Shown: positions 1 to 15,354, counted from the stretch's first letter. The stretch is 15,354 nucleotides of DNA from Bugula neritina (GCA_964035545.1 CAXIUT010000055.1:1-15354); one strand, 5' to 3'. A program made the numbers and translations. The notes: generated from the sequence alone by a model not told the origin.

Positions 1-107
1 CCCAACCCCAACCCCAACCCCAACCCCAACCCCAACCCCAACCCCAACCCCAACCCCAACCCCAACCCCAACCCCAACCCCAACCCCAACCCCAACCCCA
101 ACCCCAA
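1..107. repeat. Left telomere, CCCAA(CCCCAA)17 (Tetrahymena-type C4A2)
   Basis: Perfect C4A2 array at the very start of the window, in the orientation expected for a 5' chromosome end. Confidence 0.97.
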
Positions 108-192
108 ATTATTGATATGAAAATACTGATTGCTTTAGTTAGTATTTCATTTATAGATTTTAACAAATTATGTATTACTATAATAGATTCAA

Positions 193-1559
193 TCACTAAT
201 GTTCGATGGGCTGAATATCAGAAATCAATGAACTCTGTTCCCCTTAATTACTTAACTCCTGTTTGCTTTTCCTATATATATAGATAGTTATCAGCAAAAC
301 TATCAAACAAGTACCAGCAAAATAATCAAAAGGACCAGCTCGATCAACCCATTCATACAAAATAGCTCCCAAAATAGTTTGAAATAATATACCAACCACT
401 CCGAAAAAGGTTTGAATTCCAGTAATAAACCCTCTGGATTCAGGAGTCGAATACTCATTAACTAAGTAGAGAGAAGCAGTTAATAGTCCTGACATTCCCA
501 GTCCCAATACTACTAGAGCAGCATAAGCTAGAAAAGAAGAAGCAGAAGAAGCAAAGTTGATCATAACAGATCCAATAATGGCCAAAGAAAGCATAGCAAT
601 CATAATTTTAGCTCTACTATAGTGTTTTCTTTAATAGTAGAAACCATAAATAATACAAGTTACCATAATAACTGCATATGATATTCCACTTAGCATCGAT
701 GACTTACTAAAAGCTTCCTCATAATCAGAATCTGAACGTTTATCTGGATCTGTAAAGCTATAAGTCCAAAGAACTAAGTATAGAGATAGTAAAATAGAAT
801 CTCCTCTGGCAAGAAAAGCTGCAGTATATCCATTTGTTATTTAAGGTGACTTCACTGACTCTTTGACAATACCCAAAAGTTCTCTTGGAGTTTTTCTCTT
901 GTTTTCTCCTTTAATATAGTATTCGTTGCCAGGCTTAAGACATAAAATTGTGTAAAGGAGTCCAATTGTCACAATTAAGACAGAGATAATTCCATATTGG
1001 TAGTAAATTTTATCTGAGGTGATGTTGTTAAGGACAGAGAAGTTGATTTAGGCAGAAGCCAAGGCTCCTAAAGCAGACATAAGAACCAAAAAGGCAGCAC
1101 AAGTGCCTCTACTAGTATGACTAATATAATCAGCAAGAAGGGGGACTACCGATATGGCAATAGCACCTTAATAATAAAAGTTTTACCGGTGGCATAGATA
1201 CAACGCAAAGCAACATAAACATAGTAGTTATAGGAATAAGGCATAGCAAACATAGCTACACTAATGCAGATAATTCCATAGAGGTTAATTTTTTTTCTAC
1301 CAAACCTGTCACAGAGATATCCAAAGACAGGAGCACATGCCAGTTTGACCACAATATCAAAGGCAATCACAATCGCATTGCGGAAGTTTTAAATTTGTTA
1401 TTTTCGTTCTATCTGAAATTGAGTTTGAAGAAGAAATGGTTGAAGAGAGTCAACACTCACAAAGATAAAGGAAAGAGTGAAGTAGTGTATCAAACAGCCT
1501 AAGTAATTCTTGACAGTGATCTCCTCATTGAGAGACACCTTCCCAAAACAAGTCCGCAT
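193..1559 (-). CDS. Major facilitator superfamily (MFS) transporter, ~448 aa, 2 exons (intron 1167-1186)
   Basis: With TAR=Glu, the ORF runs from ATG 1559 (MRTCFGKVSLNEE...) to TGA 193-195. It has MFS motif A (GYLCDRFGRKK), then 'PLLADYISHTSRG' and 'VNEYSTPESRG', and many hydrophobic helices. A 20-nt GT-AG intron joins the two fragments in the ORF track. Confidence 0.9.
1167..1186 (-). other. 20-nt spliceosomal intron (GTAAAACTTTTATTATTAAG)
   Basis: Removal restores the MFS frame (...CIYATG|AIAISVVPLLAD...). Confidence 0.88.
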
Positions 1560-1695
1560 CAACTAAATAACTATTATTATCAGAACTATCTTTAACTATA
1601 TATATTATTAATCTACCTCAATCAAAAAACTAATCATCAACAAACTCAACATAAATACTATCTATATCAAATATAGTAAATATCTTCATCATCCT

Positions 1696-1750
1696 AGCTA
1701 TCTCTTCAGTCCTCTTAGCTATCTCTTCGCATCTCAGCTATCTCTTTAGC
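1696..1750. repeat. Three imperfect copies of AGCTATCTCT(T) in intergenic DNA upstream of the MFS gene
   Basis: Copies at about 1696, 1717 and 1736. Confidence 0.6.
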
Positions 1751-1851
1751 TTTTTAGATCATTTTTATTTACACAATAATTATGATTTATAATTAATAAG
1801 CAATCAAATAGAATAAAAACTCTATAAAATGAATCTATTGGTTGTTTTCCT

Positions 1852-3708
1852 TCACTCCTAGCCGTATCGATACCTTTATAACTCAGAGCCAATCTTTTTT
1901 GATTTATTAAGCAAGGATAACACTCGAGTAGATATCTCCTTTATTATCTCTTTCGACTCTTCTTCTACCACTATATCGGATTCTACAGTGTAGTCCTTTG
2001 CTCCAGATAAATCTACTTCTCCATACTACTCCAAAGGAATATCAATCTCAATCTTGATAGGTTTCTTTGGTGATGCTGATCCTCTCAATAAACTTGAAGG
2101 CTGAAAATGAACTTTTGGCTGGTATCCCTGAGAATCTCTATTGAGAGATGGGTCATGAAGATAGGGTTCTGGCTAAAGTATGTACTATTGTTTATTACCT
2201 CTTTTTTTTCCTTAGCTTTAAAAAGGCTTTTTGGTTTTTGTTTAATTTTTTATTTTTTGGGAGTATCTTTCTTGGTTAGAATACCCTCCAATGCAGGAAT
2301 ATTCTTGCTGATTGGCTTTCTTCTGGGAGTAGGCCTCTTTATTTCGTGGATCTAGTTTTAATTAAGCTTTATATTTTTTTTCATAACTTTTTGACTAAAG
2401 AGGCTATCTTGTTTGATGAGCAACTTATTTGTTCGATTTTTTGCAATTGATCACGTTGATCACTTACAGCTTACTATTGCTATTTTTATTAGAATTCTTA
2501 TTCTGGTAATCACTCTTCCCTCCTTTGAATTTATCTTTTTGCTTGGCATCCGTTGTAAATCTAGGAGAAAAGAGTTATTCTTGTCTCCTCTCTCCGACTT
2601 TAATTGGAGTTATTGTTATACTCTTCATATTTGTGCTTCTGGGAGATACCTTTATTGACTTCGACCTTTCTCTAATCTATTTCATCGATGATCTTCTAGT
2701 TGAGTTGTTCGGTGAAATCGACTTATTTGGAGATACTTTTGGAGAAGTATGAAGATAAGTATGTTTATGAGAGAAATCAGTCAGGTCAATGGTCTGTCTT
2801 TTAGGCTCTATCTCCCTTTGTAACTAAATATCTATCAATTTTCCATTACTTACATCTTATTCTCTCCTATCTGTTAAATACATCTTCTCATCTTTACTTT
2901 TGGTCTTGTATCTGCTCTATTACTTGTTTTTATTATTTTATGATCTATCTTTTTTTGCTTTTTTCTTCTCTATTGTGTTTGACTGACTAAAACTATTCTA
3001 ATGCTAAGGCATGAACTAATGAATCAGAGTATCTATTTAATCCTGTTTGTTAACTTTAGATATATTTTTAAACCTACTTGTTTTCACTAAAGCATCATAC
3101 TCTTTCTGATAGTTCAAGTACTCTTTTATCTCGTCTTGTTTCTTATCTATTTAATCTTATCCCTCTTCCCCTTTACTCTCCTCCTCTTCCCCTTTACTCT
3201 CCTCCTCTTCCCCTTTACTCTCCTCCTCTTCCCCTTTACTCTCCTCCTCTTCCCCTTTACTCTCCTCCTCTTCCCCTTTACTCTCCTCCTCTTCCCCTTT
3301 ACTCTCCTCCTCTTCCCCTTTACTCTCCTCCTCTTCCCCTTTACTCTCCTCCTCTTCCCCTTTACTATCCTCTACATAAATCTACATCACTAAACGACTG
3401 TTTTTTCCCTCTTCTCGACCTTTTCTTCTGTTTTCACATTTTGTTTATTCTTTTTTTACTGCTTTTCTTTCTTTTACTTTCAAGTTATTTTTTTTTGAAA
3501 TGCTATTTTATAATTCAGGAATATGAGCTAGAAGTCCTTTCGCTAAAGGAGAATGTTGATATTGATGAGAGAGATTGAGTTGATCGAGGATGGGTTGTAG
3601 ATGGAGACAAGAAATTGAGAACTGTTTTATTGAATAAGACGTGTTAGTTTGATGAGTATTAATTTGATACTAGTTAGTTCTATATTATGGTTTCCTATTT
3701 CCCTTCAT
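1852..3708 (-). CDS. Hypothetical low-complexity K/E/S/R-rich protein, ~618 aa, containing (GEEEESK)n
   Basis: 618 codons without an in-frame TGA from ATG 3708 to TGA 1852-1854 under TAR=Glu. The coding strand is purine-rich. No recognisable domain; the start codon is uncertain. Confidence 0.75.
3162..3370 (-). repeat. Coding minisatellite, ~10 x 21 bp (GGGGAAGAGGAGGAGAGTAAA) encoding GEEEESK
   Basis: Near-perfect 21-bp tandem array, in frame within the 1852-3708 CDS. Confidence 0.93.
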
Positions 3709-3731
3709 TGATTACTATTATAGTTGCTTAT

Positions 3732-3940
3732 ATTCGTTAAATCATCAAAATATCATTAGTTCAATCATCAATCTATCATTAGTTCAATCATCAAAATATC
3801 ATTAGTTCAATCATCAATCTATCATTAGTTCAATCATCAAAATATCATTCGTTAAATCATCAATCTATCATTAGTTCAATCATCAAAATATCATTCGTTA
3901 AATCACCATTCTATCATTAGTTCAATCATCAAAATATCAT
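3732..3940. repeat. Non-coding tandem repeat, ~9 x 23 bp (ATTAGTTCAATCATCAAAATATC / ...AATCTATC variants)
   Basis: 23-bp period with alternating AAAAT/AATCT variants. It is TGA-rich on the minus strand and ends about 24 nt upstream of ATG 3708. Confidence 0.9.
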
Positions 3941-4302
3941 AAAAACATCATTTTATTATCCATTAGATCATCAACCAAAATCACTTATAGATTTATCTAA
4001 TTAAAATAATTAAATAAAGCATCTAAATTTTAATATTATGTCCTTTTTTCTGATTTTAGGACTATCATTGTAAACTAATTTATCTAGATCGACATCACAC
4101 CTATATCCATAACAATGTTATTGTAGGTATTGATGGTAATTTTTGTAGTCCAAGTTATCTATTTCTATATTTCTTTTATAATATTGTTACTAGCTTACCA
4201 TGAATCTCCTTCTCTTTTTTATTTGATTTTATCATCTCCTATCTCTAACTACACTGATAATACCTATTTCTTTAAGCAAAGATAATGATAATTTTTATAA
4301 AA

Positions 4303-5818
4303 TCATTTTTTTCTATATAATCCAGCTTGTCTATATATTTTATCTAGATCTAGTCGTTTTCTTTTTTATTCCTACTCCAATTATCTAACAAACGATCTCG
4401 TGTCTTTGACTTGGTTTCTAGTTGGAGTTCTATTAGCCGATCTATCTCTTCCCTCTTTATTTCTAGAATGCGATGATAGTTATCTTTTTTAGTTTAATCT
4501 GCTTTGACCTGTCTACCTTTATTTATTTTATCTATTTTATTGCTTGTAGCTATTGAGATAGGTCAGTCCACTCTATTTAGACTTTCTTCGATCATACTAT
4601 TCCTATTATTTATCTAAAGTAAAATACTGGTTGGCTTTTCTCTCTACTGGCCCATACTAACTCAATCTAGCCTTTATTGGTGATGAATCTTCAATTGCAT
4701 CTTGCTCCATTTAGTACTTATGCAGACTTGAATCATTAGCTAATCTATCACTCAGTTTAGAGGACTCCTTGGGTCTATCATTCAGTTTAGAGGACTCCTT
4801 GGCTCTATCATTCAGTTTAGAGGACTCCTTGGGTCTATCACTCAGTTTAGAGGATAGCTTTGATCGGCCTTCGAGTGATAGAAGAGTGATAAGATTAGAG
4901 AAGTGGGTGGCGAGTCCTAGCATGACAATGTCATTATAGAAGTAGATGGATCTAAGATGAAACTATTTTCTGATTTAGCAGATTTATCTGGTTGGGAATC
5001 CAAATCCTTTTTCAAGTGTATTTTTACCATCATGCTACCCTAAAGTATATTTATTACCAATTGGATAATATTTTACCCCGATTCCTCTCAACTGCCCCTC
5101 CTTAAATATTCCATCCTCGATGCACTACTGGGCATAGTACCTGCCTATTCCTTAGAGCAAAGTTCCTAGATGTTACCCTACGCTCACAACTTGATTTTCT
5201 CTAAGTACAAATCCATAGCGTCGTCCTTTATTAAAACACTACTCGTAGCCAAACAATTTATCCTACCCCATGGGTACTATAGTGGGTATATATCTCGGTA
5301 TCTATTATTAGTTGTCGATTGATGCCTATTTCATAAATGATATTAAAAATTATTATATGGTGTACATCTGTTTCGGAAAATGCTGGCTAAGAGCTTCATA
5401 GACCTATCTGTCTCGAATTGGAGTTTTGGATATTATTTATTTTAGTTATGAATTAGCAAACTGACCTACTATGACCTGTCCGTTTTATATGCCTATTGCC
5501 TTACCGTATAATCTGTCTTATCGGAACATGCCGTATAATGTCTTTTCGGTCTTGTTCTCATTTCTACTCCAAAAAATATTGTACCCATCTACTCTGTTAC
5601 CTAGCATCTGTCCGTAGGCTCTGAGGTTGTCAGAAATAAAAATATATTTGCCATGAATGTTATTTTTTTTCCAATTCGCTTGATGAGATAGAAGTACCTA
5701 GTAAAATTTGTGAGTTATCAAGGACTAGTAATCCATGTCCATTACGTTGGTATTGTTCGAAAATACCATAGTAGGTGGCATTTCTGTATTGGACATGGGT
5801 TGGTAGCCGTCCTGACAT
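4303..5818 (-). CDS. MORN-repeat-like protein with charged C-terminal tail, ~498 aa, 2 exons (intron 5679-5697)
   Basis: Starts at ATG 5818 (MSGRLPTHVQYRNATYYGIFEQYQRNGHGLL...). It has repeated Y-x-G-x-F/W-xxxxx-G-x-G-like units (ANWKKNNIHGKY, YGQMLGNRVDGY, YGMFREDRLYGKA, EDGIFKEGQLRGIG). After removing a 19-nt intron the frame is open to TGA 4303-4305. Confidence 0.75.
4742..4855 (-). repeat. Coding tandem repeat, ~4 x 30 bp encoding SSKL(S/N)DR(P/A)KE
   Basis: Visible 30-bp period inside the MORN-like CDS. Confidence 0.88.
5679..5697 (-). other. 19-nt spliceosomal intron (GTACTTCTATCTCATCAAG)
   Basis: Without it, exon 1 runs into TGA. Removal joins ATG 5818 to the long open frame, and it has the A at -6. 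Confidence 0.75.
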
Positions 5819-6306
5819 TAAATTGATTTAATTATCTTTGATTTCCTAACTCAAGATTTATCCACTATCTTAATATAAGTAGAGATGATGATGATGTTTT
5901 AAGGATTAATAAATAGGTGATCAGAATATGAATGGAAAGAGTTATTTTTAATAGATGATGAGTGTTAAGGTGTTAAAGTTAGAGATAATATTTGATAAAA
6001 CATCAAATAATGGTATATTAATGATGCTTGGCCTAAAGTAAGAATCATCCACAGTATCTCCATCTCAGAATCGGTCTATTTCCCTTTTTCATTCAATGCT
6101 TCATGCTTAAAAAGGGTAAGCTTCCAGAAGTGACCTTGCTATGACACGACCTATTATTCTAAATTTAGTAAACGAAAGGCTTACTAGCTTCTAAATCAAT
6201 TTAGTTATGAAGGCGGGAAGGTATGAGTGATAAATAGGGCCTAGAATATTAGTTAGGTAGAAATTTGAATTTGTGGTAGCGAGAGGGTCCTTGTTGTAAG
6301 CAAAAA

Positions 6307-6972
6307 ATGTAAACAAAGGAAACAACCTAATACTAAACTGCTGGACAAGTGGAAGCACTGAGCAAACGGGAACAAGTCAAACTCGAAAAGGCCATCCAAA
6401 TGATTGAAAGTGTAGACGTAGGAACCCTATTACCTAGAATCCATAGAACCGCAGTCGTAAACGCAGAGCTCACACTAACATCAAAGGATCAGAACCTGCT
6501 GCTAGAAAACAAATCAAGGTAGCTATCCTCTCAGTCAGATCGACTCCCAACTAGCCTCCCATCCATCCGATGATATGTCATCTTCTTCACACAACCAAGG
6601 GCCTGCTTCTACTACTCCTCCAGAACAACTTCCTCCTCATAGCCATCATCCACAACACTTTAATGTTCAATACAACTTGCCAGAAGGTATGATTTCTATG
6701 ACTTAGGAGAAGGGGCACTCTTCAACTACCTCATCTGTTACTCTTTTGAGCAGGGAGAAAGGCAATTTGAGAAATAAGGGAAGGATTGGGCTTAAATTGA
6801 TCAATTGGGTGAAGAAGTAGTTCCTTTAGAGACAAATAATGGTTCTAAGTTGATATGTGAGAAGCTAGATAAGAAGTTTAGAGAAGGAGGAGACAGAATG
6901 AAAGAACCATTTGGGAAAAGTCATAGAGAATTGTAACAAAAATTTTTCAAGAAAAAGTTTATCTTTGAATGA
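6307..6972 (+). CDS. Hypothetical protein, ~201 aa, 4 exons (introns 6418-6437, 6519-6538, 6687-6706)
   Basis: Start context CAAAAAATG. No single frame is open across the region, but removing three 20-nt GTA...AG segments (each with T at -8 and A at -6) gives one ORF: METKETTEYETAGQ...SVD|NPENRSRKRRAH...KQIK|IDSQLASHPSDD...LPEG|EGALFNYLICYSF...KKFIFE*. It includes a basic NLS-like stretch and an S/P/H-rich linker. No homology recognised. Confidence 0.65.
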
Positions 6973-7209
6973 TGGTATTGTGCTTAATAGGTTATCAATT
7001 AAAAGTCACTTATGAGGAAAAACAAGGCTTTAAAGCTCTAAAATATCTATCTATTAAGATAAGAGGATATATTTAAGTAGAGCCAGGAGAAGAAGAGACC
7101 CTAGAGATGGTTTTTCTTTGTTACAATAAGTTCATTAGAGTTTTTAAAGTTGATCTAGACAATAAAGTTTAATTATGACTGAAGGTCATATTTATAATAT
7201 CTATTGTAA

Positions 7210-8285
7210 ATGAAAAAGTAGGTCATTTTAGTTTTTTGCGCTGCTCTTGTACCTGCTGTCACTTATCTATTCAATAAGTTGAGAGCTAATCGACTGAAAA
7301 AAGGAAAAAATAATCTCTATGTAGGAATCGAATTAGGAGGAACGAACTATAAAGTTGCAATCGCATAACCAGTCTTTAATATCAAAGGAAATATTTTGGA
7401 TTTTCGTATTATTAAAACAAAAAATGGAAATACTTATCAGGATCCTGCCCAATCAATAAAATAAATTCTTGATTTTATTTAATCAGTTCAGCTTTCAGGG
7501 CAGCAATAGAATCAGGAGGTGATATTGGATTTTATAGGGATAGCTTCTTTTGGTCCACTTTGTCTTGATAGAAAAAGCAAAAACTATGGAACAATAACAA
7601 CAACTCCTAAATAGTTATGGAGAGGAATGAAAATATTAGAACAAGTTACTTCTCCTTTTTCTTCTGTTCGTTGTTAAATTGATACTGATGTCAATGCTGC
7701 TGCTTATGCCTAGTTTAGGTTAGGCAATCATGGAGTATCGTAATCTTTAGTCTATATTACTGTTGGAACTGGAGTAGGAGTAGGATTGATTGCTAATGGA
7801 AAAACTGTCCATGGTTTAACTCACCCTTAAGGAGGACATTGTATGTAATTAGCTCTTAAGCTAGAGTTTAAAGACACCCTTAATAGTATTAAGGATTTAG
7901 AGGAGTTTGTCCTTTTCATCGAGAACAAACATGTGCTTAAGGAATGGTCACAAATAAATCGATAGCATAGCGTTTGGGTGTAAGTTTTACAGCTTTGGCT
8001 TAAATGTCTGAAGACATCCGAGTTTGGAAGCTAGTTGGTTTCTATTTGGCACAGGTCTGTTTAAATATAACTCTTTTAGTATCTCCAGAAGTAATAGTAA
8101 TAGGAGGAGGAATTATGAATCGATCCATTATTTATGGAATCATTCAATAAGAATTTTTAAGGATGTTAGCTCAATATATCGAACACCCTTTGTTAAGCAA
8201 GGTGGGAGTTCATAAATATATAGTTGCTCCAAAATTAGGACAAGACGTTGGAGTAAAGGGAGCAATGGCTCTTTCACTCATGTGA
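7210..8285 (+). CDS. ROK-family fructokinase (bacterial ScrK/YdhR-like) with N-terminal hydrophobic anchor, ~351 aa, 2 exons (intron 7845-7864)
   Basis: Motifs GIELGGT, GIASFGP, GTITTTPK, IDTDVNAAAYA[TAG=E], YITVGTGVGVG, HP[TAA=E]GGH, Zn-site GVCPFH..CA[TAA=E]G and IVIGGG. Ends at TGA 8283-8285. Confidence 0.92.
7845..7864 (+). other. 20-nt spliceosomal intron (GTAATTAGCTCTTAAGCTAG)
   Basis: Removal joins HPEGGHC to ...GVCPFH in frame. Confidence 0.88.
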
Positions 8286-8400
8286 TATGTTATATCAAAT
8301 TGCTAATTTATTCGTTCTTAAATTATATAGGTCTAAATGTTTACTCATTTAAAATCAAGATTTATTCAATTGGATATTAAATAAAATATATTTAAAGAAA

Positions 8401-8906
8401 ATGAGCTACTGGCCTTACTATTCATCATATTCTCCCTACTATTGGAGGTAATAAATCGATAAAAAAGACATCCCTATCCATACTATGATCCCTTACTCGT
8501 CAGACCATCAATCGAAGCATCTATTGCTGCATCAAGTCTTCGAAGATCCAGAATTGAAGCTTAAGTTGCAGCTGATAGTGCTCTTAGAAGATCAAGAATC
8601 GAAGCTGAAATTTCTGCATCAAGAGCTGCTACTGAAAGTGCTCTTAGAAGATCAAGAATTGAGGCAGAAATAGCTGCTGATAGTGCATTAAGAAGATCAA
8701 GAGTAGAAGCCGAAATTTCTGCATCAAGAGCTGCTACTGAAAGCGCTCTAAGAAGATCAAGATTGGAAGCCGATATAGCTACAGAAGCAGCTCTAAGAAG
8801 GTCCAGAGTAGAAGCTGAGCTTTCAGCATCCCGAAGAGCAGTTGAAGATGAAGAAAGAAGAAGGAGAGTCGAGATGGATGTTGAAAGGATTCTTACCAAG
8901 TATTGA
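8401..8906 (+). CDS. Small repeat protein, ~161 aa: Y/W/P-rich N-terminus plus six (S/A)LRRSR(I/V/L)EA(E/D) repeats; intron 8448-8467
   Basis: Starts MSYWPYYSSYSPYYWR|HPYPYYDPLL... after removal of a 20-nt intron. The amino-acid repeats use degenerate codons. Ends at TGA 8904-8906. Function unknown; a structural or cortical role is inference. Confidence 0.82.
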
Positions 8907-8946
8907 TCTCATAGAATTAACATTAAATATTGATAATAGGTAATGA

Positions 8947-10491
8947 TCAGAACATTCCTCTTGAGTTGTTAGCGTAGGCCATAGGTCCAACTGGAGGGTG
9001 TGGCTAAATTAAAAATTAAATACAACTGCTTAAAATTGGATGAATTTAGGAAGAAGAGAATCTCCCCTCAGATGAATATAGGCAGCTTTGTTTCCCTGGA
9101 AATCACAGTAGTTTGGAGCACTAAAAATAGTTACACATTGTCTGTCGTGAGTCTATTCGTATCCTTCAACTTTGACTTCATGTGAGCGGATCAGAAGACC
9201 TGAGTTAATAAAGATTTACTTAAGTTATTTTCTTGAAGAAATTTTTTTGTAATGTCTGGCCCAAAGGCCATAGAAGCTCCTCTTTTACTGGGAGTATGTC
9301 CTGAAGTGGGTGAAGGATCGGCCCATAGGAGGTCACACATGAGTCCTTTTTCTGGAGGTTCAGCAAATCTGTAGGTATCTTTGATGTCTTTGAGAGTGAC
9401 TCCATCATAGGAAGGTAGTCCACCATGACAGATCATAACTTTATCATTGATGACATATGAAAGAGGAAGTCCACAGAAGAATTCTGAAAAGGCTTAATAG
9501 ACTCCAAGATCTTTGTACTTAGCTTCTACTTCTCCTTTGAATCCATAAATATGATTAACTTGTTTGGCTTAGTGATTGCCTCTTGTCATATGTAAGAAAT
9601 CAATATTCACACATTTCCAGGCAATAAGAGTTAAGATGCATTAAACAGAGAAAGATCCCCTATCGACATAGTCTCCATTAAAAAGATACTTATTATTAAT
9701 GGAAGGGAAGCCATTCAATTTGAAGATGTTAAAGAGATCATAATATTGTCCGTGAATATCTCCACAAATAGTGATATGTTCTTATTTATCAATTTGATAG
9801 TTTACTAGTGATGAATAGGAACTAACAAGTTATCGACAGATTTCTAGCAGCTGTAAGGTATATCTTTTATGTAATTTTTTTTGGTCTTTGAAATGTTCCA
9901 TCATTTTAATGACCCTAAGTTATTCAATTTATACCATTCAGAAGTGACTGGTTCTTTTTCTTATAATTTAGGTCCAGTATAGTCTTTTTCTACTTCTATT
10001 TATCTCCAGTTTTTGTATGGTTTTTATTTTTTCTATCCTCTTTCTTTATCATCTTGAAGCATAGTCAATCTTTTGTTTTTAATTAGTTCTTAACTTTGTC
10101 TCTTACATTAGGCTAGTTTTTGATGTATGATTTAGTCTTTTTTTCCTGAAAGTTAAAAAGCTTTCAGATAGGCTGAGTATGCGTCTTTATAATTTTGAAG
10201 AATTTCTTTAGCGAAGGCTAATCTTAGGTAAGCTTTTTCATATTCTGGGTTATTAGCAATACTGGCTTAAGCATCTGGAATGGCTAGACCATAATTTTAT
10301 AGTTTGATATGTGCAAAAGCTCTATTGGCATAGTAGATAGCCAATTTATTTTTGGGTACTCTTGAGTTTTAAGTTGAGGCAGTTTCAATAGCTTTAGTGT
10401 AGAGGTCGACGGCAGGTTCAAATTGGTTATTTTTGAGTTGAGCATTTCCTTGTTCTTTTTGTTGTTCGCTGGTGGTGAGAGCGTCTTACAT
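8947..10491 (-). CDS. PPP5C: Serine/threonine protein phosphatase 5 (TPR + PPP catalytic domain), ~494 aa, 4 exons (introns 9915-9934, 9200-9219, 9004-9023)
   Basis: N-terminal TPRs (KEQGNAQLK...[34 protein letters not shown]). PPP motifs GDIHGQ, GDYVDRG, RGNH[TAA=E], HGG, DLLWADP, IRSHE and FSAPNYC. The C-terminus F[TAA=E]AV|[12 protein letters not shown] is typical of PP5. Confidence 0.95.
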
Positions 10492-10540
10492 AATGAAAAT
10501 GATTATTTAAGTAATGACAAATTATCGTATCTAACAACAA

Positions 10541-10603
10541 GGGGTTGGGGTTGGGGTTGGGGTTGGGGTTGGGGTTGGGGTTGGGGTTGGGGTTGGGGTT
10601 GGG
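10541..10603 (+). repeat. Interstitial telomeric tract (GGGGTT)10GGG
   Basis: Perfect G4T2 array between the divergent PP5 and Pol delta genes. Confidence 0.95.
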
Positions 10604-10846
10604 ATTTAATATATATTTGGTCATAAAAGATAGACCAGTCATCTTTCAAATTTAATCAATATAAAATATTATAAATTATGATTAATGGAGATGATTTCCA
10701 AGATCGAGTTAACTTCTTTGAGGATTGATAATGAATTTATTTTACTTTGATTAATTTTATATAAACTATCAACTTTGTATTGAATATTTGAGCGCTTTTT
10801 ATAAGATTTCAATATTTATTAAGTTTAGCGGGTAATCTTAGACAAA

Positions 10847-13800
10847 ATGAACTGGGACTAACAAGAAGATATCCAAGACAACTTCTAAGAAGCAGAAGAC
10901 TTTGATTTGGAACACTAGGTCACCAACTCATACAACTAAGAACGTCTTCAGAAAGAATATAAAGATTTCAAAAGACCAGAAATTGATCTTGATCCCATCA
11001 GATCTAAAACTGATGATCTTTATATCATGGGTCTCGATATTACTTCTGCAAATAATCCAGATACAGATGAGGAAGGTACACAAATATGAATATAGGTAAA
11101 AGGGTGATGAGACCATAAATAAAGATCTATGGGACTAATGAAAAAGGAAATTCTTTTCTTATTCATGTTAAATAATTTGTTCCCTACTTCTATGTGTCCT
11201 TTCCTCGAGGTTTGGTCAATACGCCTTAAAATTTAGACCAGTTGAGAGTTGCTATAAACAAAAGATTCAAAGATATGTAATAGCAAAAACACAAAAAGGA
11301 ATATTTCAATTCGAGAATGGTAACATAAGAAGCTATTTTGAGGCTCGAGCCTGTTCACAGAGTAAATATATATGGTTATCTTCCGAAATAAAGAGAAAAT
11401 GACTTTTTATACTTGAAAATTCATACATGTACTCCAAATGTTGTGGCTCCTCTTAGAAATCTTTTCCACAGTTAGTTTCAAATTAGTGGAATAAACTTAC
11501 CTCCTCAAACATTTGAAAGCAATATTCCTTATGCTCTTCGTTTTATGGTCGATAAAAATCTAACTGGCATGGGATGGTTCAAAATAGCTGCTCATCAATA
11601 TACTCTGAGATAAAATTTGAAAGACAGTAGTTGTCAGGCTGAAATTGACTGTAATGTGGACGCGATTACTGAATTGAAGAGCGAAGGAGCTTGGGCTAAA
11701 ATTGCTCCTTTAAGAATATTATCTTTTGATATTGAATGTGCAGCATAGCATGGTTTTCCTTCAGCTGATAAAGATCAGATTATTCAAATATGTTGTGTCT
11801 GCAAGACTTTACCAGCTAAAGAAGATTCAGATGAGTATAGAATAGCTTTGGTGCTTAAAGGATGTTCTTCAATATCAGGAGTTTAGATAAAATAAACCGA
11901 CAGCTAGGTTGAACTTCTTCAATTCTTTTAAGATTTTGTTCTAAGTTACGATCCTGACTTTATAATAGGCTACAATATAATTTACTTTGATTTGCCTTAT
12001 ATTTTAGATAGAGCTGTAAAATTAAAAATGAAGGGTTATGGTCATTTCGGTCGATCCAACGTTCTTTCCAGAATTAAGAAAGGAACAATTCAATCAAAGA
12101 TCATGGGCAACCGTGAGACCAAAGATATCAACATTGAAGGAAGAATTCAATTAGATCTACTTATTCATATGCATAGATAACATAAACTATCATCTTATTC
12201 TCTTAATAATGTGAGTTATCATTTCCTAAAAGATCAAAAATAAGATGTCCACCATTCTTAGGTATTTAAATTATTCTTGCAATCTAGAGATACAAGGAAA
12301 AGATTGGCTATCTATTGTGTTAAAGACTCTGAACTTCCTCTTAAACTTCTAGAAAAGTTATGCTGTCTGTTTAATTACTCTTAAATGGCTAGAGTTACAG
12401 GAGTACCTATTAATTTTCTACTTAATAGAGGCCAGCAAATCAAAGTTGTCAGTCAGTTATTGAGAAAAGCAAAGGAAAAATTATTTATTTTGCCAACTAG
12501 TAGAGGTCAAAAAGCTTCAGATGCAAAAGGATTTGATGGAGCATACGTACTAGACCCAATTGTAGGATTTTATAAAGAACCTATAGCCACCTTAGACTTT
12601 GCTTCTCTATATCCATCTATTATGATGGCTCATAACCTTTGTTATACGACTTTAGTAAAAGCAAATCAATTAAATGATTTTTCTTTGACTCAAGAAGATG
12701 TTAAAAAAACACCTTAAGGATTTTATTTTGTTATTAATAAAGATAAAAGATAAGGATTGCTACCATAAATTTTAAATGAGCTGATTACAACTAGAAAAAA
12801 GGCGAAGAAAGATCTTGCTATTTTACAAGAAAAGATTACAGCCAAATAAAATACTAAAAATTATCAAACTAAGGAAGAGGATGAGATGCTGAGGAATGTT
12901 CTTGAAGGTCGTCAATTAGCTTTAAAGATAAGTGCGAATTCTGTATATGGTTTTACTGGTGCAACAGTCGGTCAACTACCTTGTCTTTAGATAAGTTCAT
13001 CAGTCACAGCTTTTGGTCGTGAGATGATCGACAAGACAAGAAATAGAGTGAAGTAGCTTTATCCTGGATCAGAGGTGGTTTATGGAGACACTGATTCTGT
13101 GATGGTGAAGTTTAATTTAGGAGAATATGAATAGATGTAGAAAAAGGATCAAATATTAAGATCTATGCAGCTAGGAAAGTAAGCAGCTACACAGATATCA
13201 GGATAATTCAAGGCTCCAATAAAATTATAATTTGAGAAGGTATATTGTCCATTTTTATTGATGAAGAAGAAGAGATATGTTGGAGTGTATTATAGTAAGA
13301 GTCACTAGACATTCGATAAAATCGACAAGAAGGGATTTTAGAGTGTGAGAAGGGATAATTGCTATTTAATAAGATAGATGTTATAAAATATATTGGATCT
13401 TTTGCTTCGCGAAAACAAAGTCGAGGAAATTCCAACCTACATAAAGAAAGTTATTTCTGAATTGGTTCAGAATAAGATAGATATTTCTAAGCTGGTCATA
13501 ACTAAATCTCTTAACAAAAAGAATTAATCCGATGAAGTTTAAGAAAAAAATACAGGTAAAAATACATACAAAGTTAAGCAGGCTCATGTTGAGTTGGCTA
13601 TAAAGATGAAAAAAAGAGATGAGAATATGAGTCTGAATATTGGAGATAGGATAAATTATGTGATGATTTAAGGTCAGAAGGGCTCTAAAAATTATTAAAA
13701 TGCTTAAGATCCCATTAAAGTGCTAGAGGAAGATATTCCCATTGATTTTGATTACTATATTCAAAAACAAATCAAACCTCCTCTTTAAAGACTTCTGTAT

Positions 13801-14217
13801 AAAACAAAAATAATTCCTAATATTGATGCTCTCTTTACTGGAGATCATACTAAAAGCAGATATATATCAAAAATAAACCGAAGCACTATGCTTGGAGCAT
13901 TTATTAAGGTTCATTCTACTTGCACAAATTGTCCAACTAAGTCAGATAGTCCTTTGTGCTAGAGATGTCAAGGAAGAGCGTTGGATATCCTTGTAACTAA
14001 ACAGTTATAGATGGAGGCAATGAAGGCAGAGTATCAAAAGCTATGGGGAGAGTGTCAGAAATGTCAGGGAAGCATTACTATGGATATTTTATGTTCCAAT
14101 GTTGATTGTCCTATTTACTACAGGAGAATCAAAGTTAAAAAGGATCTGGCTGATAAAGTAAAACAGGTTAACAGACTTGCTACCCTTGAAAATCTAGAAG
14201 AAAAAGAAAACTTTTGA
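10847..14217 (+). CDS. POLD1: DNA polymerase delta catalytic subunit, ~1116 aa, 2 exons (intron 11076-11095)
   Basis: ExoI (LSFDIEC), ExoII ([11 protein letters not shown]), ExoIII (YCVKDS), Pol region II ([20 protein letters not shown]), region III ([17 protein letters not shown]) and region I (YGDTDS), plus C-terminal CysA (CTNC...CERC) and CysB (CQKCQG...CSNVDC). The frame is continuous once TAR=Glu and one 20-nt intron is removed. Confidence 0.97.
11076..11095 (+). other. 20-nt spliceosomal intron (GTACACAAATATGAATATAG)
   Basis: Contains an in-frame TGA; removal joins exon 1 to the frame carrying all the Pol delta motifs. Confidence 0.88.
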
Positions 14218-14286
14218 TTATGATTAATCATCAATCTTATTCTTTATCATTATCATGTTAGTAACCCATTAGTCAAATTCAATAAA

Positions 14287-14355
14287 GGGGTTGGGGTTGG
14301 GGTTGGGGTTGGGGTTGGGGTTGGGGTTGGGGTTGGGGTTGGGGTTGGGGTTGGG
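14287..14355 (+). repeat. Interstitial telomeric tract (GGGGTT)11GGG
   Basis: Perfect G4T2 array between the convergent Pol delta and GNAT genes. Confidence 0.95.
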
Positions 14356-14363
14356 AACATGAA

Positions 14364-15116
14364 TCAATTGATTTTTTTAAACATGATAGCAGGATATCTG
14401 TTGTTTTAATCAACTTATTGGTAGGGTAGATTTCCTTTGAATTCGAAATGATGGCAATCAAGTTAAGCTATAATTAGAAATTAATGTAATTTAAAATATT
14501 TTTTAGTGATTGCATTGGTTGTAATTACAAATCCATACTAGAATCCTTTATTTTTACCTAATTCAATCATCAACTCTATTATCTTTTTGCCTATTCCATG
14601 TCCTAAATGTTCTAATTTGGTAGCTATTCCATGAAAATCAAGTACTTTCCCTTTCTATCTAAGCAACGCCTTAACTTTCTAATCAATTTTATCAAGTAAA
14701 CTCCCAAACATAGCATCTTCCATTTACAATAAATAATTATTTTGATTTTGATAGACTCCTTAACACCTACTATAATCGACAGCTGCACCAACTCCTATCA
14801 CCTAGTCACTCTTATTTCTATTACAAACCACTATACTCAGTTAATTTGTTGTCAATTACTATATACAATGGTTCCAATACCTAGTCGCTGCTCTAGTGGC
14901 TAGTTCTACTAGTTATGGCCTCTGTTTTGAGATTGATTTTATAATTGGATTTTATTATGACATTGATTTTATTATCAATTCAAGAGTTTGTTTTTTGTGA
15001 TTGGGAGTCATTATTCTGAAGGAATAACTTTTATATCTATAAAGCTATTTAAAAGGATGTGAAGTTTTATATTGGCTGTTGCTGAATTGTTGCTATAGAT
15101 GCAATAGTTGATGCAT
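14364..15116 (-). CDS. GNAT-family N-acetyltransferase, arylalkylamine (AANAT)-like, ~250 aa, intronless
   Basis: Open from ATG 15116 to TGA 14364-14366 under TAR=Glu. Segments include 'LSIVVCN..DEVIGV', the acetyl-CoA-binding motif A 'HGIATKLEHLGHGIGKKI', 'LGKNKGFEYGFVITTNAITKKYF' and a C-terminal 'FEFKGNLPY...IMFKKI'. It is absent from the ORF track. Confidence 0.82.
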
Positions 15117-15123
15117 TGTCCTC

Positions 15124-15250
15124 TACTAAATATAGTTCAACTATATCTTTACTAAATATAGTTCAATTAAATCTTATCAAATATAGTTCAATTATATCTT
15201 TACTAAATATAGTTCAATTATATCTTATCTAATATAGTTCAATTATACCT
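15124..15250. repeat. Subtelomeric tandem repeat, 5 x 25/26 bp (core AATATAGTTCAA)
   Basis: Units start near 15128, 15154, 15179, 15205 and 15230, alternating 26/25 bp. The array lies immediately upstream of the GNAT ATG. Confidence 0.88.
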
Positions 15251-15273
15251 TTTGTATATTGTTTAGTGATATG

Positions 15274-15354
15274 GGGGTTGGGGTTGGGGTTGGGGTTGGG
15301 GTTGGGGTTGGGGTTGGGGTTGGGGTTGGGGTTGGGGTTGGGGTTGGGGTTGGG
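15274..15354. repeat. Right telomere (GGGGTT)13GGG
   Basis: Perfect G4T2 array running to the window end. Confidence 0.97.

Follow-up and report, generated by a model that had tools for sequence, protein, structure and literature searches.

The two internal G4T2 tracts in this assembled molecule are not a real feature of the chromosome as internal telomeres. In all probability they are an artefact that arose when telomeres from shorter forms of the same minichromosome were written, in the assembly, over approximately 63 to 69 real bases at each site. The gene order in which the tracts are set, PP5-POLD1-GNAT, is real and contiguous. Two runs from the same organism contain an abundant read-through form of equal length, and the presence of ordinary, non-repeat letters in this form where the assembly has telomere repeats can be deduced from the way in which the contigs of those runs are built.

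The window, by which we mean the whole 15,354-nt stretch of DNA that was analysed, has a telomere at each end on inspection of the sequence, and its long reading frames are closed by TGA only. TGA as the sole stop, together with the uninterrupted translation of the gene for the DNA polymerase delta catalytic subunit (POLD1) and the two terminal telomeres, identifies the window, on its sequence, as a macronuclear minichromosome of ~15.3 kb from a peritrich-code ciliate, assembled from telomere to telomere. A search for a three-unit G4T2 pattern returned 43 matches in the window, against 0 expected from 200 shuffles. The features discussed below are collected in Table 1.

Table 1. Genes, repeats and telomeric tracts in the window, with the basis of each assignment.
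Feature	Position	Strand	Basis
Left telomere, CCCAA(CCCCAA)17	1..107	.	repeat search
MFS-type transporter gene(s)	193..1685	-	TGA-only ORFs, peritrich-code translation, Pfam MFS_1
PP5-like phosphatase gene	9191..10494	-	translation, Pfam Metallophos 1.7e-10, motifs by eye
Internal G4T2 tract 1, perfect, 63 nt	10541..10603	+	repeat search
DNA polymerase delta catalytic subunit (POLD1)	10847..14217	+	code 30 translation, PF00136 homologues
Internal G4T2 tract 2, perfect, 69 nt	14287..14355	+	repeat search
GNAT-type acetyltransferase gene	14364..15116	-	translation, weak Pfam Acetyltransf_1
26-nt tandem repeat, 5 copies, directly inside right telomere	15124..15252	.	repeat search
Right telomere, (GGGGTT)13GGG, 81 nt	15274..15354	+	repeat search

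The genes on either side of the tracts are recognizable to differing degrees. POLD1 has a short first exon from an ATG at 10847 and a main frame at 11071-14217 that closes with TGA; under code 30 it translates without interruption over 1048 residues, with the DIECA and YGDTDS motifs present, and it is 73% identical to the protein of a relative (L001) over 1049 residues and 69% identical at the DNA level. The PP5-like gene is composed of an N-terminal TPR part, starting at ATG 10494, and a metallophosphatase part in a different frame, the TPR part and the motifs GDIHGQ, GDYVDRG and RGNHE having been identified by eye. Assignment of the GNAT-type gene is weaker, with a Pfam Acetyltransf_1 match (E 0.0039) under the curated cut-off, a stop at 14364-14366 and candidate ATGs at 15011 and 15116. 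At the far left of the molecule, stop-free pieces within 193..1685 match Pfam MFS_1 at 1.5e-14 and 5.1e-07, and the stop of the MFS gene (193-195) is separated from the left telomere by 85 nt.

As a description of the assembled sequence, the account in the earlier note stands. It had reported two perfect internal tracts in intergenic DNA, oriented as the right chromosome end, and the repeat search and the gene annotation bear this out. It had also reported a common register, and in the window all three G-strand tracts do terminate in ...TTGGG while the left end begins with the complementary CCCAA. The lengths of these three tracts (63, 69 and 81 nt) are all of the form 6n+3, as for telomeres. 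The junctions from tract to unique DNA are likewise as claimed, with ATTTAATAT... following tract 1 directly from 10604 and AACATGAATC... following tract 2 directly from 14356, and a repeat search of the window found no C4A2 run beside either tract. The genes are intact at both junctions. What is confirmed in this way is the content of the assembly; no DNA molecule with the tract-bearing structure is confirmed thereby.

The intergenic DNA that contains tract 1 separates divergent genes, the tract being 46 nt from the ATG of the PP5-like gene on the minus strand and upstream of the POLD1 ATG; tract 2 lies between convergent genes, with the POLD1 stop (14217) 69 nt upstream and the GNAT stop 8 nt past the end of the tract. 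The natural 3' trailers on this minichromosome are those between POLD1 and tract 2, of 69 nt, and between the MFS gene and the left telomere, of 85 nt. The position of the GNAT stop fits a 3' trailer hidden beneath tract 2, and it fits poorly with a GNAT module that truly starts at 14356, which would have almost no 3' trailer left.

Independent evidence on the two sites comes from Logan contigs. The region is present in four runs, all in this form, and their contigs were placed on window positions 10000-15354. Two runs (X1 and X2) derive from a single study of organism A, the same organism as the window, and contain 0.91 and 0.89 of the sampled region words; they may represent the assembly's own sample or may differ from the reads used for it. 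The other two (X3 and X4) derive from organism B in a different study and give low, patchy coverage, one contig (X4 record 20) extending 22 letters beyond 10532 with those letters masked. Letters at repeat places are masked in the contig placement generally, and the spacing between the flanks remains readable. Contigs of this kind are blind to minor variants and to molecule ends, and the depth given for each is a single value that is confounded by allelic splitting.

Both tract sites are bridged in organism A. In X1, record 1 (3265 nt) matches window 10000-10532 at its own positions 1447-1979 and window 10613-11978 at its positions 1-1366, leaving 80 letters between the flanks of tract 1 against 80 in the window, and record 4 bridges the tract 2 site with 83 letters against 84. 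In X2, a single contig (record 7, 5761 nt) is placed on 10000-10532, 10613-14280 and 14365-14475 and bridges both sites, with spacings of 80 against 80 and 83 against 84. The X1 flanks from 10000 to 14280 contain zero mismatches, and X2 record 7 runs unbroken from 8714 to 14475, through the PP5-like gene and POLD1 into the 3' end of the GNAT gene. The three read-through contigs have depths of 12.7 to 77.9. Relative to the tract-less contig form, then, the tracts add no length. The proposal that separate gene modules are joined through the tracts is contradicted by X2 record 7, in which the three genes follow one another contiguously.

The bridging contigs are informative beyond their spacing since they are of a kind that cannot hold the tracts. 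Under the Logan construction rule, each 31-mer occurs at most once among the contigs of a run. Tract 1 comprises 33 31-mers and tract 2 comprises 39, only 6 of which are distinct in each, and these 6 are identical in both internal tracts and at both chromosome ends. It follows from the uniqueness rule that no Logan contig can hold a 63- or 69-nt tract, and, from the sharing of all 31-mers between the two tracts, that a single contig cannot hold both. The rule is demonstrably obeyed in this region. The only other repeated 31-mers nearby start at 8712 and 8713, as copies of those at 8607 and 8608, and X1 record 1 and X2 record 7 both end at 8714, directly beside this two-k-mer repeat. Contigs also break up within the 26-nt repeat near the right telomere.

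From these considerations the bridging contigs are deduced to carry non-telomeric, non-repetitive letters, 63 at the first site and ~68 at the second. Equal spacing in contigs that are incapable of holding a tract means that the tracts replace real sequence and are not inserted between gene modules. Certain ways in which telomeric letters might nevertheless be accommodated were set aside. A tract shortened by way of the telomere k-mer cycle would reach at most 36 nt, and the spacing of the flanks would then be ~50 letters where 80 are observed. Nor, at 68-69 nt, could a single change yield a tract of variant repeats that fits within a k=31 contig, and for tract 1 (63 nt) such a tract would need a contrived variant placed exactly at the centre. 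A query across the first junction (10574-10633, 60 nt, in which each 31-mer combines tract and unique DNA) returned no run. As a test this is weak, amounting to two sampled words from junction paths which may be pruned from contigs near the telomere hub; its outcome agrees with the 31-mer argument.

The explanation that we favour is one in which the PP5-like gene, POLD1 and the GNAT gene are contiguous in the DNA, with ordinary, non-telomeric sequence at 10541-10603 and 14287-14355, and in which shorter forms of the chromosome would also be present, their telomeres added after ~10540 or ~14286. During assembly the sequences of these shorter forms would be stacked position for position onto the longer form, and at a consensus, polishing or contig-merging step the telomere letters would win over one telomere length. 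Past the physical end of the telomere (...TTGGG) the long form alone would contribute, and unique sequence would resume. Tract 1 would be the telomere of an isoform ending near 10540, laid over 63 intergenic letters, and tract 2 that of an isoform ending near 14286, laid over ~68 letters in which POLD1 and the GNAT gene would have their 3' trailers. Overlay of this kind accounts for the right-end orientation of the tracts, their common end register and their 6n+3 lengths. It also explains why no C4A2 half is present, why the genes are intact and why the sequence replaced is of equal length.

The earlier note had offered, as its alternative, that nested isoforms were merged by the consensus step. 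The merging of isoforms is the part of that suggestion which is upheld here; a tract as additional DNA is the part which has to be given up, with 63 nt of tract standing in place of 63 letters at the first site and 69 nt in place of ~68 at the second. The sites themselves have the properties of internal telomere addition sites: the junctions are intergenic, they have the orientation and register of a chromosome end, and there is a longer isoform that reads through. The properties of an overlay are present as well, in that the aberrant segment replaces an equal length of sequence, the letters of which are deduced, and is absent from independent contigs. We infer that shorter, telomere-capped isoforms generated at internal telomere addition sites exist. 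Complementary right-hand fragments might have been expected to leave an internal C4A2 overlay of their own, which is absent in the window; this implies scarcity or loss of such fragments, or else an overlay step that works in one direction only. The read-through form itself appears to be abundant DNA and not germline, because micronuclear DNA at a contig depth of 12.7x would hardly yield k-mers seen twice, and on this reasoning a germline source for it was rejected. The modest doubt that attaches to the overlay explanation has its sources in the deduced character of the replacement letters, the origin of X1 and X2 in one study, and the blindness of contigs to minor variants.

A pair of variants of this picture seem, taken together, improbable. 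In one, a minority of real molecules that were healed and rejoined, too few for contigs to show, would exist beside the read-through form. In the other, which is a weaker version, there would be a truncation series of left-anchored minichromosomes with right ends close to 10540, close to 14286 and at 15273, their telomeres having a fixed terminal register and 6n+3 lengths and the right-hand fragments being discarded.

Very unlikely, in our judgement, is the interpretation that the tracts are real telomere scars, left when telomerase healed the left piece at developmental breaks and this piece was then rejoined to an unhealed right piece. This was the earlier note's reading of the tracts as real junctions of unique DNA, G4T2 and unique DNA, and it has in its favour the assembled sequence itself, in which the tracts are intergenic and share one orientation. 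A healed and rejoined molecule, however, should exceed the tract-less form by the length of the tract, and the two lengths are equal, with tract-incapable contigs bridging both sites at that spacing. The query with the two sampled junction words returned no run, and a GNAT fragment beginning at 14356 would leave 8 nt past the stop codon. Independent sequence spanning unique DNA, tract and unique DNA was to have been the check on this idea, and the contigs that do span the sites are ones which cannot contain a tract.

Even less credible is a chimera, at the level of the library or of individual reads, or a concatenation of three minichromosomes (1-10603, POLD1 alone and GNAT alone) through ligation or by the assembler. 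Embedded telomere sequence is known in chimeric long reads (PMC6937825), and every segment of the window is laid out roughly like a small chromosome. End-to-end joining nevertheless predicts G4T2 followed by C4A2, and C4A2 is absent at both tracts. In addition, X2 record 7, built at k=31, is continuous across 8714-14475, which places the segments side by side in abundant DNA; the depth argument given above for the read-through form makes it difficult to attribute this continuity to germline DNA. The least likely of the alternatives is that interstitial G4T2 tracts in the germline were kept in the macronucleus as telomere seeds beside an equal-length, tract-less allele, for although the germline of some ciliates has interstitial telomere-like repeats and the sites are plausible chromosome ends, a perfect 63- or 69-nt tract would have to be swapped, at two sites, for unrelated sequence of equal length. 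Moreover, the perfect repeats and physical-end register of the tracts would be expected if telomerase products at real ends had been copied, and the two sampled junction words were not found.

Comparison with relatives contributes little to the choice among these explanations. Eight POLD1 loci of relatives (L001-L008) were compared, and neither PP5 nor GNAT adjoins POLD1 in any of the eight, nor does any of them contain a telomere-like run; a Ufd2/U-box gene is found downstream of POLD1 in L001, L003 and L005. These loci are uninformative for the two tract sites. Scans of metagenomes with the flanks of tract 1 and with those of tract 2, each with a variable gap, gave 0 matches. In a protein collection, exact look-up of two ORFs, one of 68 aa at the C terminus of POLD1 and one of 53 aa next to tract 1, returned no record, and a stop-free piece of POLD1 (110 aa) used in a homologue search had no match above 88% identity, from which it follows that contigs of this organism are absent from the collection.

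If other internal tracts in this assembly are of like origin, each will hide ~60-80 real bases, and the sequence hidden under tracts of the overlay type may include promoters, 3' trailers or even coding DNA. It would be wrong to interpret such tracts as fusions, scars or junctions between modules. At the same time a genuine internal telomere addition site probably lies at each of them, and tracts of this kind therefore offer a map of alternative chromosome ends in peritrich minichromosomes.

Internal telomere addition sites are already known from spirotrichs and heterotrichs, and a literature search found no published description of them in peritrichs. One peritrich genome has been assembled with MEGAHIT from amplified DNA (PMC12411067), with no established tie to the window. 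The closest parallel is Oxytricha trifallax, in which internal telomere addition sites occur and nested isoforms are merged by assembly pipelines (Lindblad et al., 2019, PMC6937825); for alternative fragmentation in this species, the same article cites Swart et al. (2013). As in O. trifallax, the window shows a short multigene chromosome in which telomere repeats directly adjoin unique DNA at internal positions between genes. The telomeres of O. trifallax are G4T4, whereas the window has G4T2 telomeres and the peritrich code; its shorter isoforms are moreover inferred, and the merged contig retains their telomere letters as an overlay where in O. trifallax they are dropped.

A second parallel lies in the treatment of long reads. 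In the O. trifallax work, telomeric sequence embedded away from the ends of corrected long reads was filtered as artefact (PMC6937825, methods), and there, as proposed for the window, internal repeats stem from data processing and not from the chromosome. In contrast to chimeras of different chromosomes, however, the flanks in the window are contiguous and the tract substitutes for sequence of equal length. Blepharisma, too, has genomes of somatic minichromosomes, with widespread telomere addition sites along contigs (described in PMC13685798). Its many alternative addition sites are recognized from reads that carry telomeres at places along longer contigs and are not written into the consensus, unlike the tracts of the window, which also belongs to another ciliate class with another telomere repeat. 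Set beside these systems, the biology that probably underlies the tracts, nested isoforms produced through internal telomere addition, is of a known kind.

One terminal register is common to all four telomere tracts of the window, namely the left telomere (1-107), the two internal G4T2 runs termed tract 1 (10541-10603) and tract 2 (14287-14355), and the right telomere (15274-15354): in the window sequence ...TTGGG closes the G strand and CCCAA opens the C strand. The G-strand tracts are 63, 69 and 81 nt long, every one of the form 6n+3. One possible source of both register and lengths is that the C strand has a defined 5' end in this species; another is that the assembler trimmed the tracts. 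The motif TCAATAA stands one base ahead of the repeats at the left end of the chromosome as well as at the addition site of tract 2 (Table), and is absent from the same position in front of tract 1 and of the right end of the window. Its occurrence at two sites could be a chance coincidence in AT-rich DNA.

Table. Features of the window and of one relative's contig
Feature	Position	Sequence or unit	Matches	Remark
Left chromosome end	108-125	...ATCAATAAT, then TTGGGG		reverse complement
Tract 2 addition site	14270-14286	...TTCAATAAA, then GGGGTT		
Tandem repeat	3162-3372	21 nt x10	99%	
Tandem repeat	3732-3940	46 nt x4.5		
Tandem repeat	4744-4854	30 nt x3.7		
Tandem repeat	8537-8830	105 nt x2.8		
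Tandem repeat	15124-15252	26 nt, 5 copies	86%	directly inside right telomere
POLD1 locus in L001	8631-11731			

In contigs of two public runs from one organism and one study (X1 and X2; Logan, k=31), contig depth in X1 is 77.9 up to a k-1 overlap spanning 11949-11978, within POLD1, and falls to about 41 beyond it, and the X1 contig across the GNAT part (14365-15140) differs from the window at five positions (14419, 14514, 14604, 14705 and 14798), three of which are shared by X2, 14705 not being found there. The fall in X1 depth and these differences suggest that two versions, allelic or paralogous, are mixed in the window. A further X1 contig, of 956 nt and higher depth, matches 15165-15263 with four differences and then continues into other sequence, and repeats resembling the 26-nt array are therefore probably present at other loci. 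The remaining four arrays are near-perfect and lie within or adjoin long TGA-bounded reading frames.

In the PP5-like gene (9191-10494, minus strand), the TPR part at 9901-10494 is read in one frame and the phosphatase part at 9191-9937 in another, a switch consistent with a very short intron. Neither PP5 nor GNAT adjoins POLD1 in L001, L003 and L005, three longer (up to 47 kb) peritrich-like contigs found in metagenomes and public sequencing runs, and the gene order surrounding POLD1 is therefore not conserved between the window's species and these relatives, in all three of which a Ufd2/U-box gene lies downstream of POLD1.
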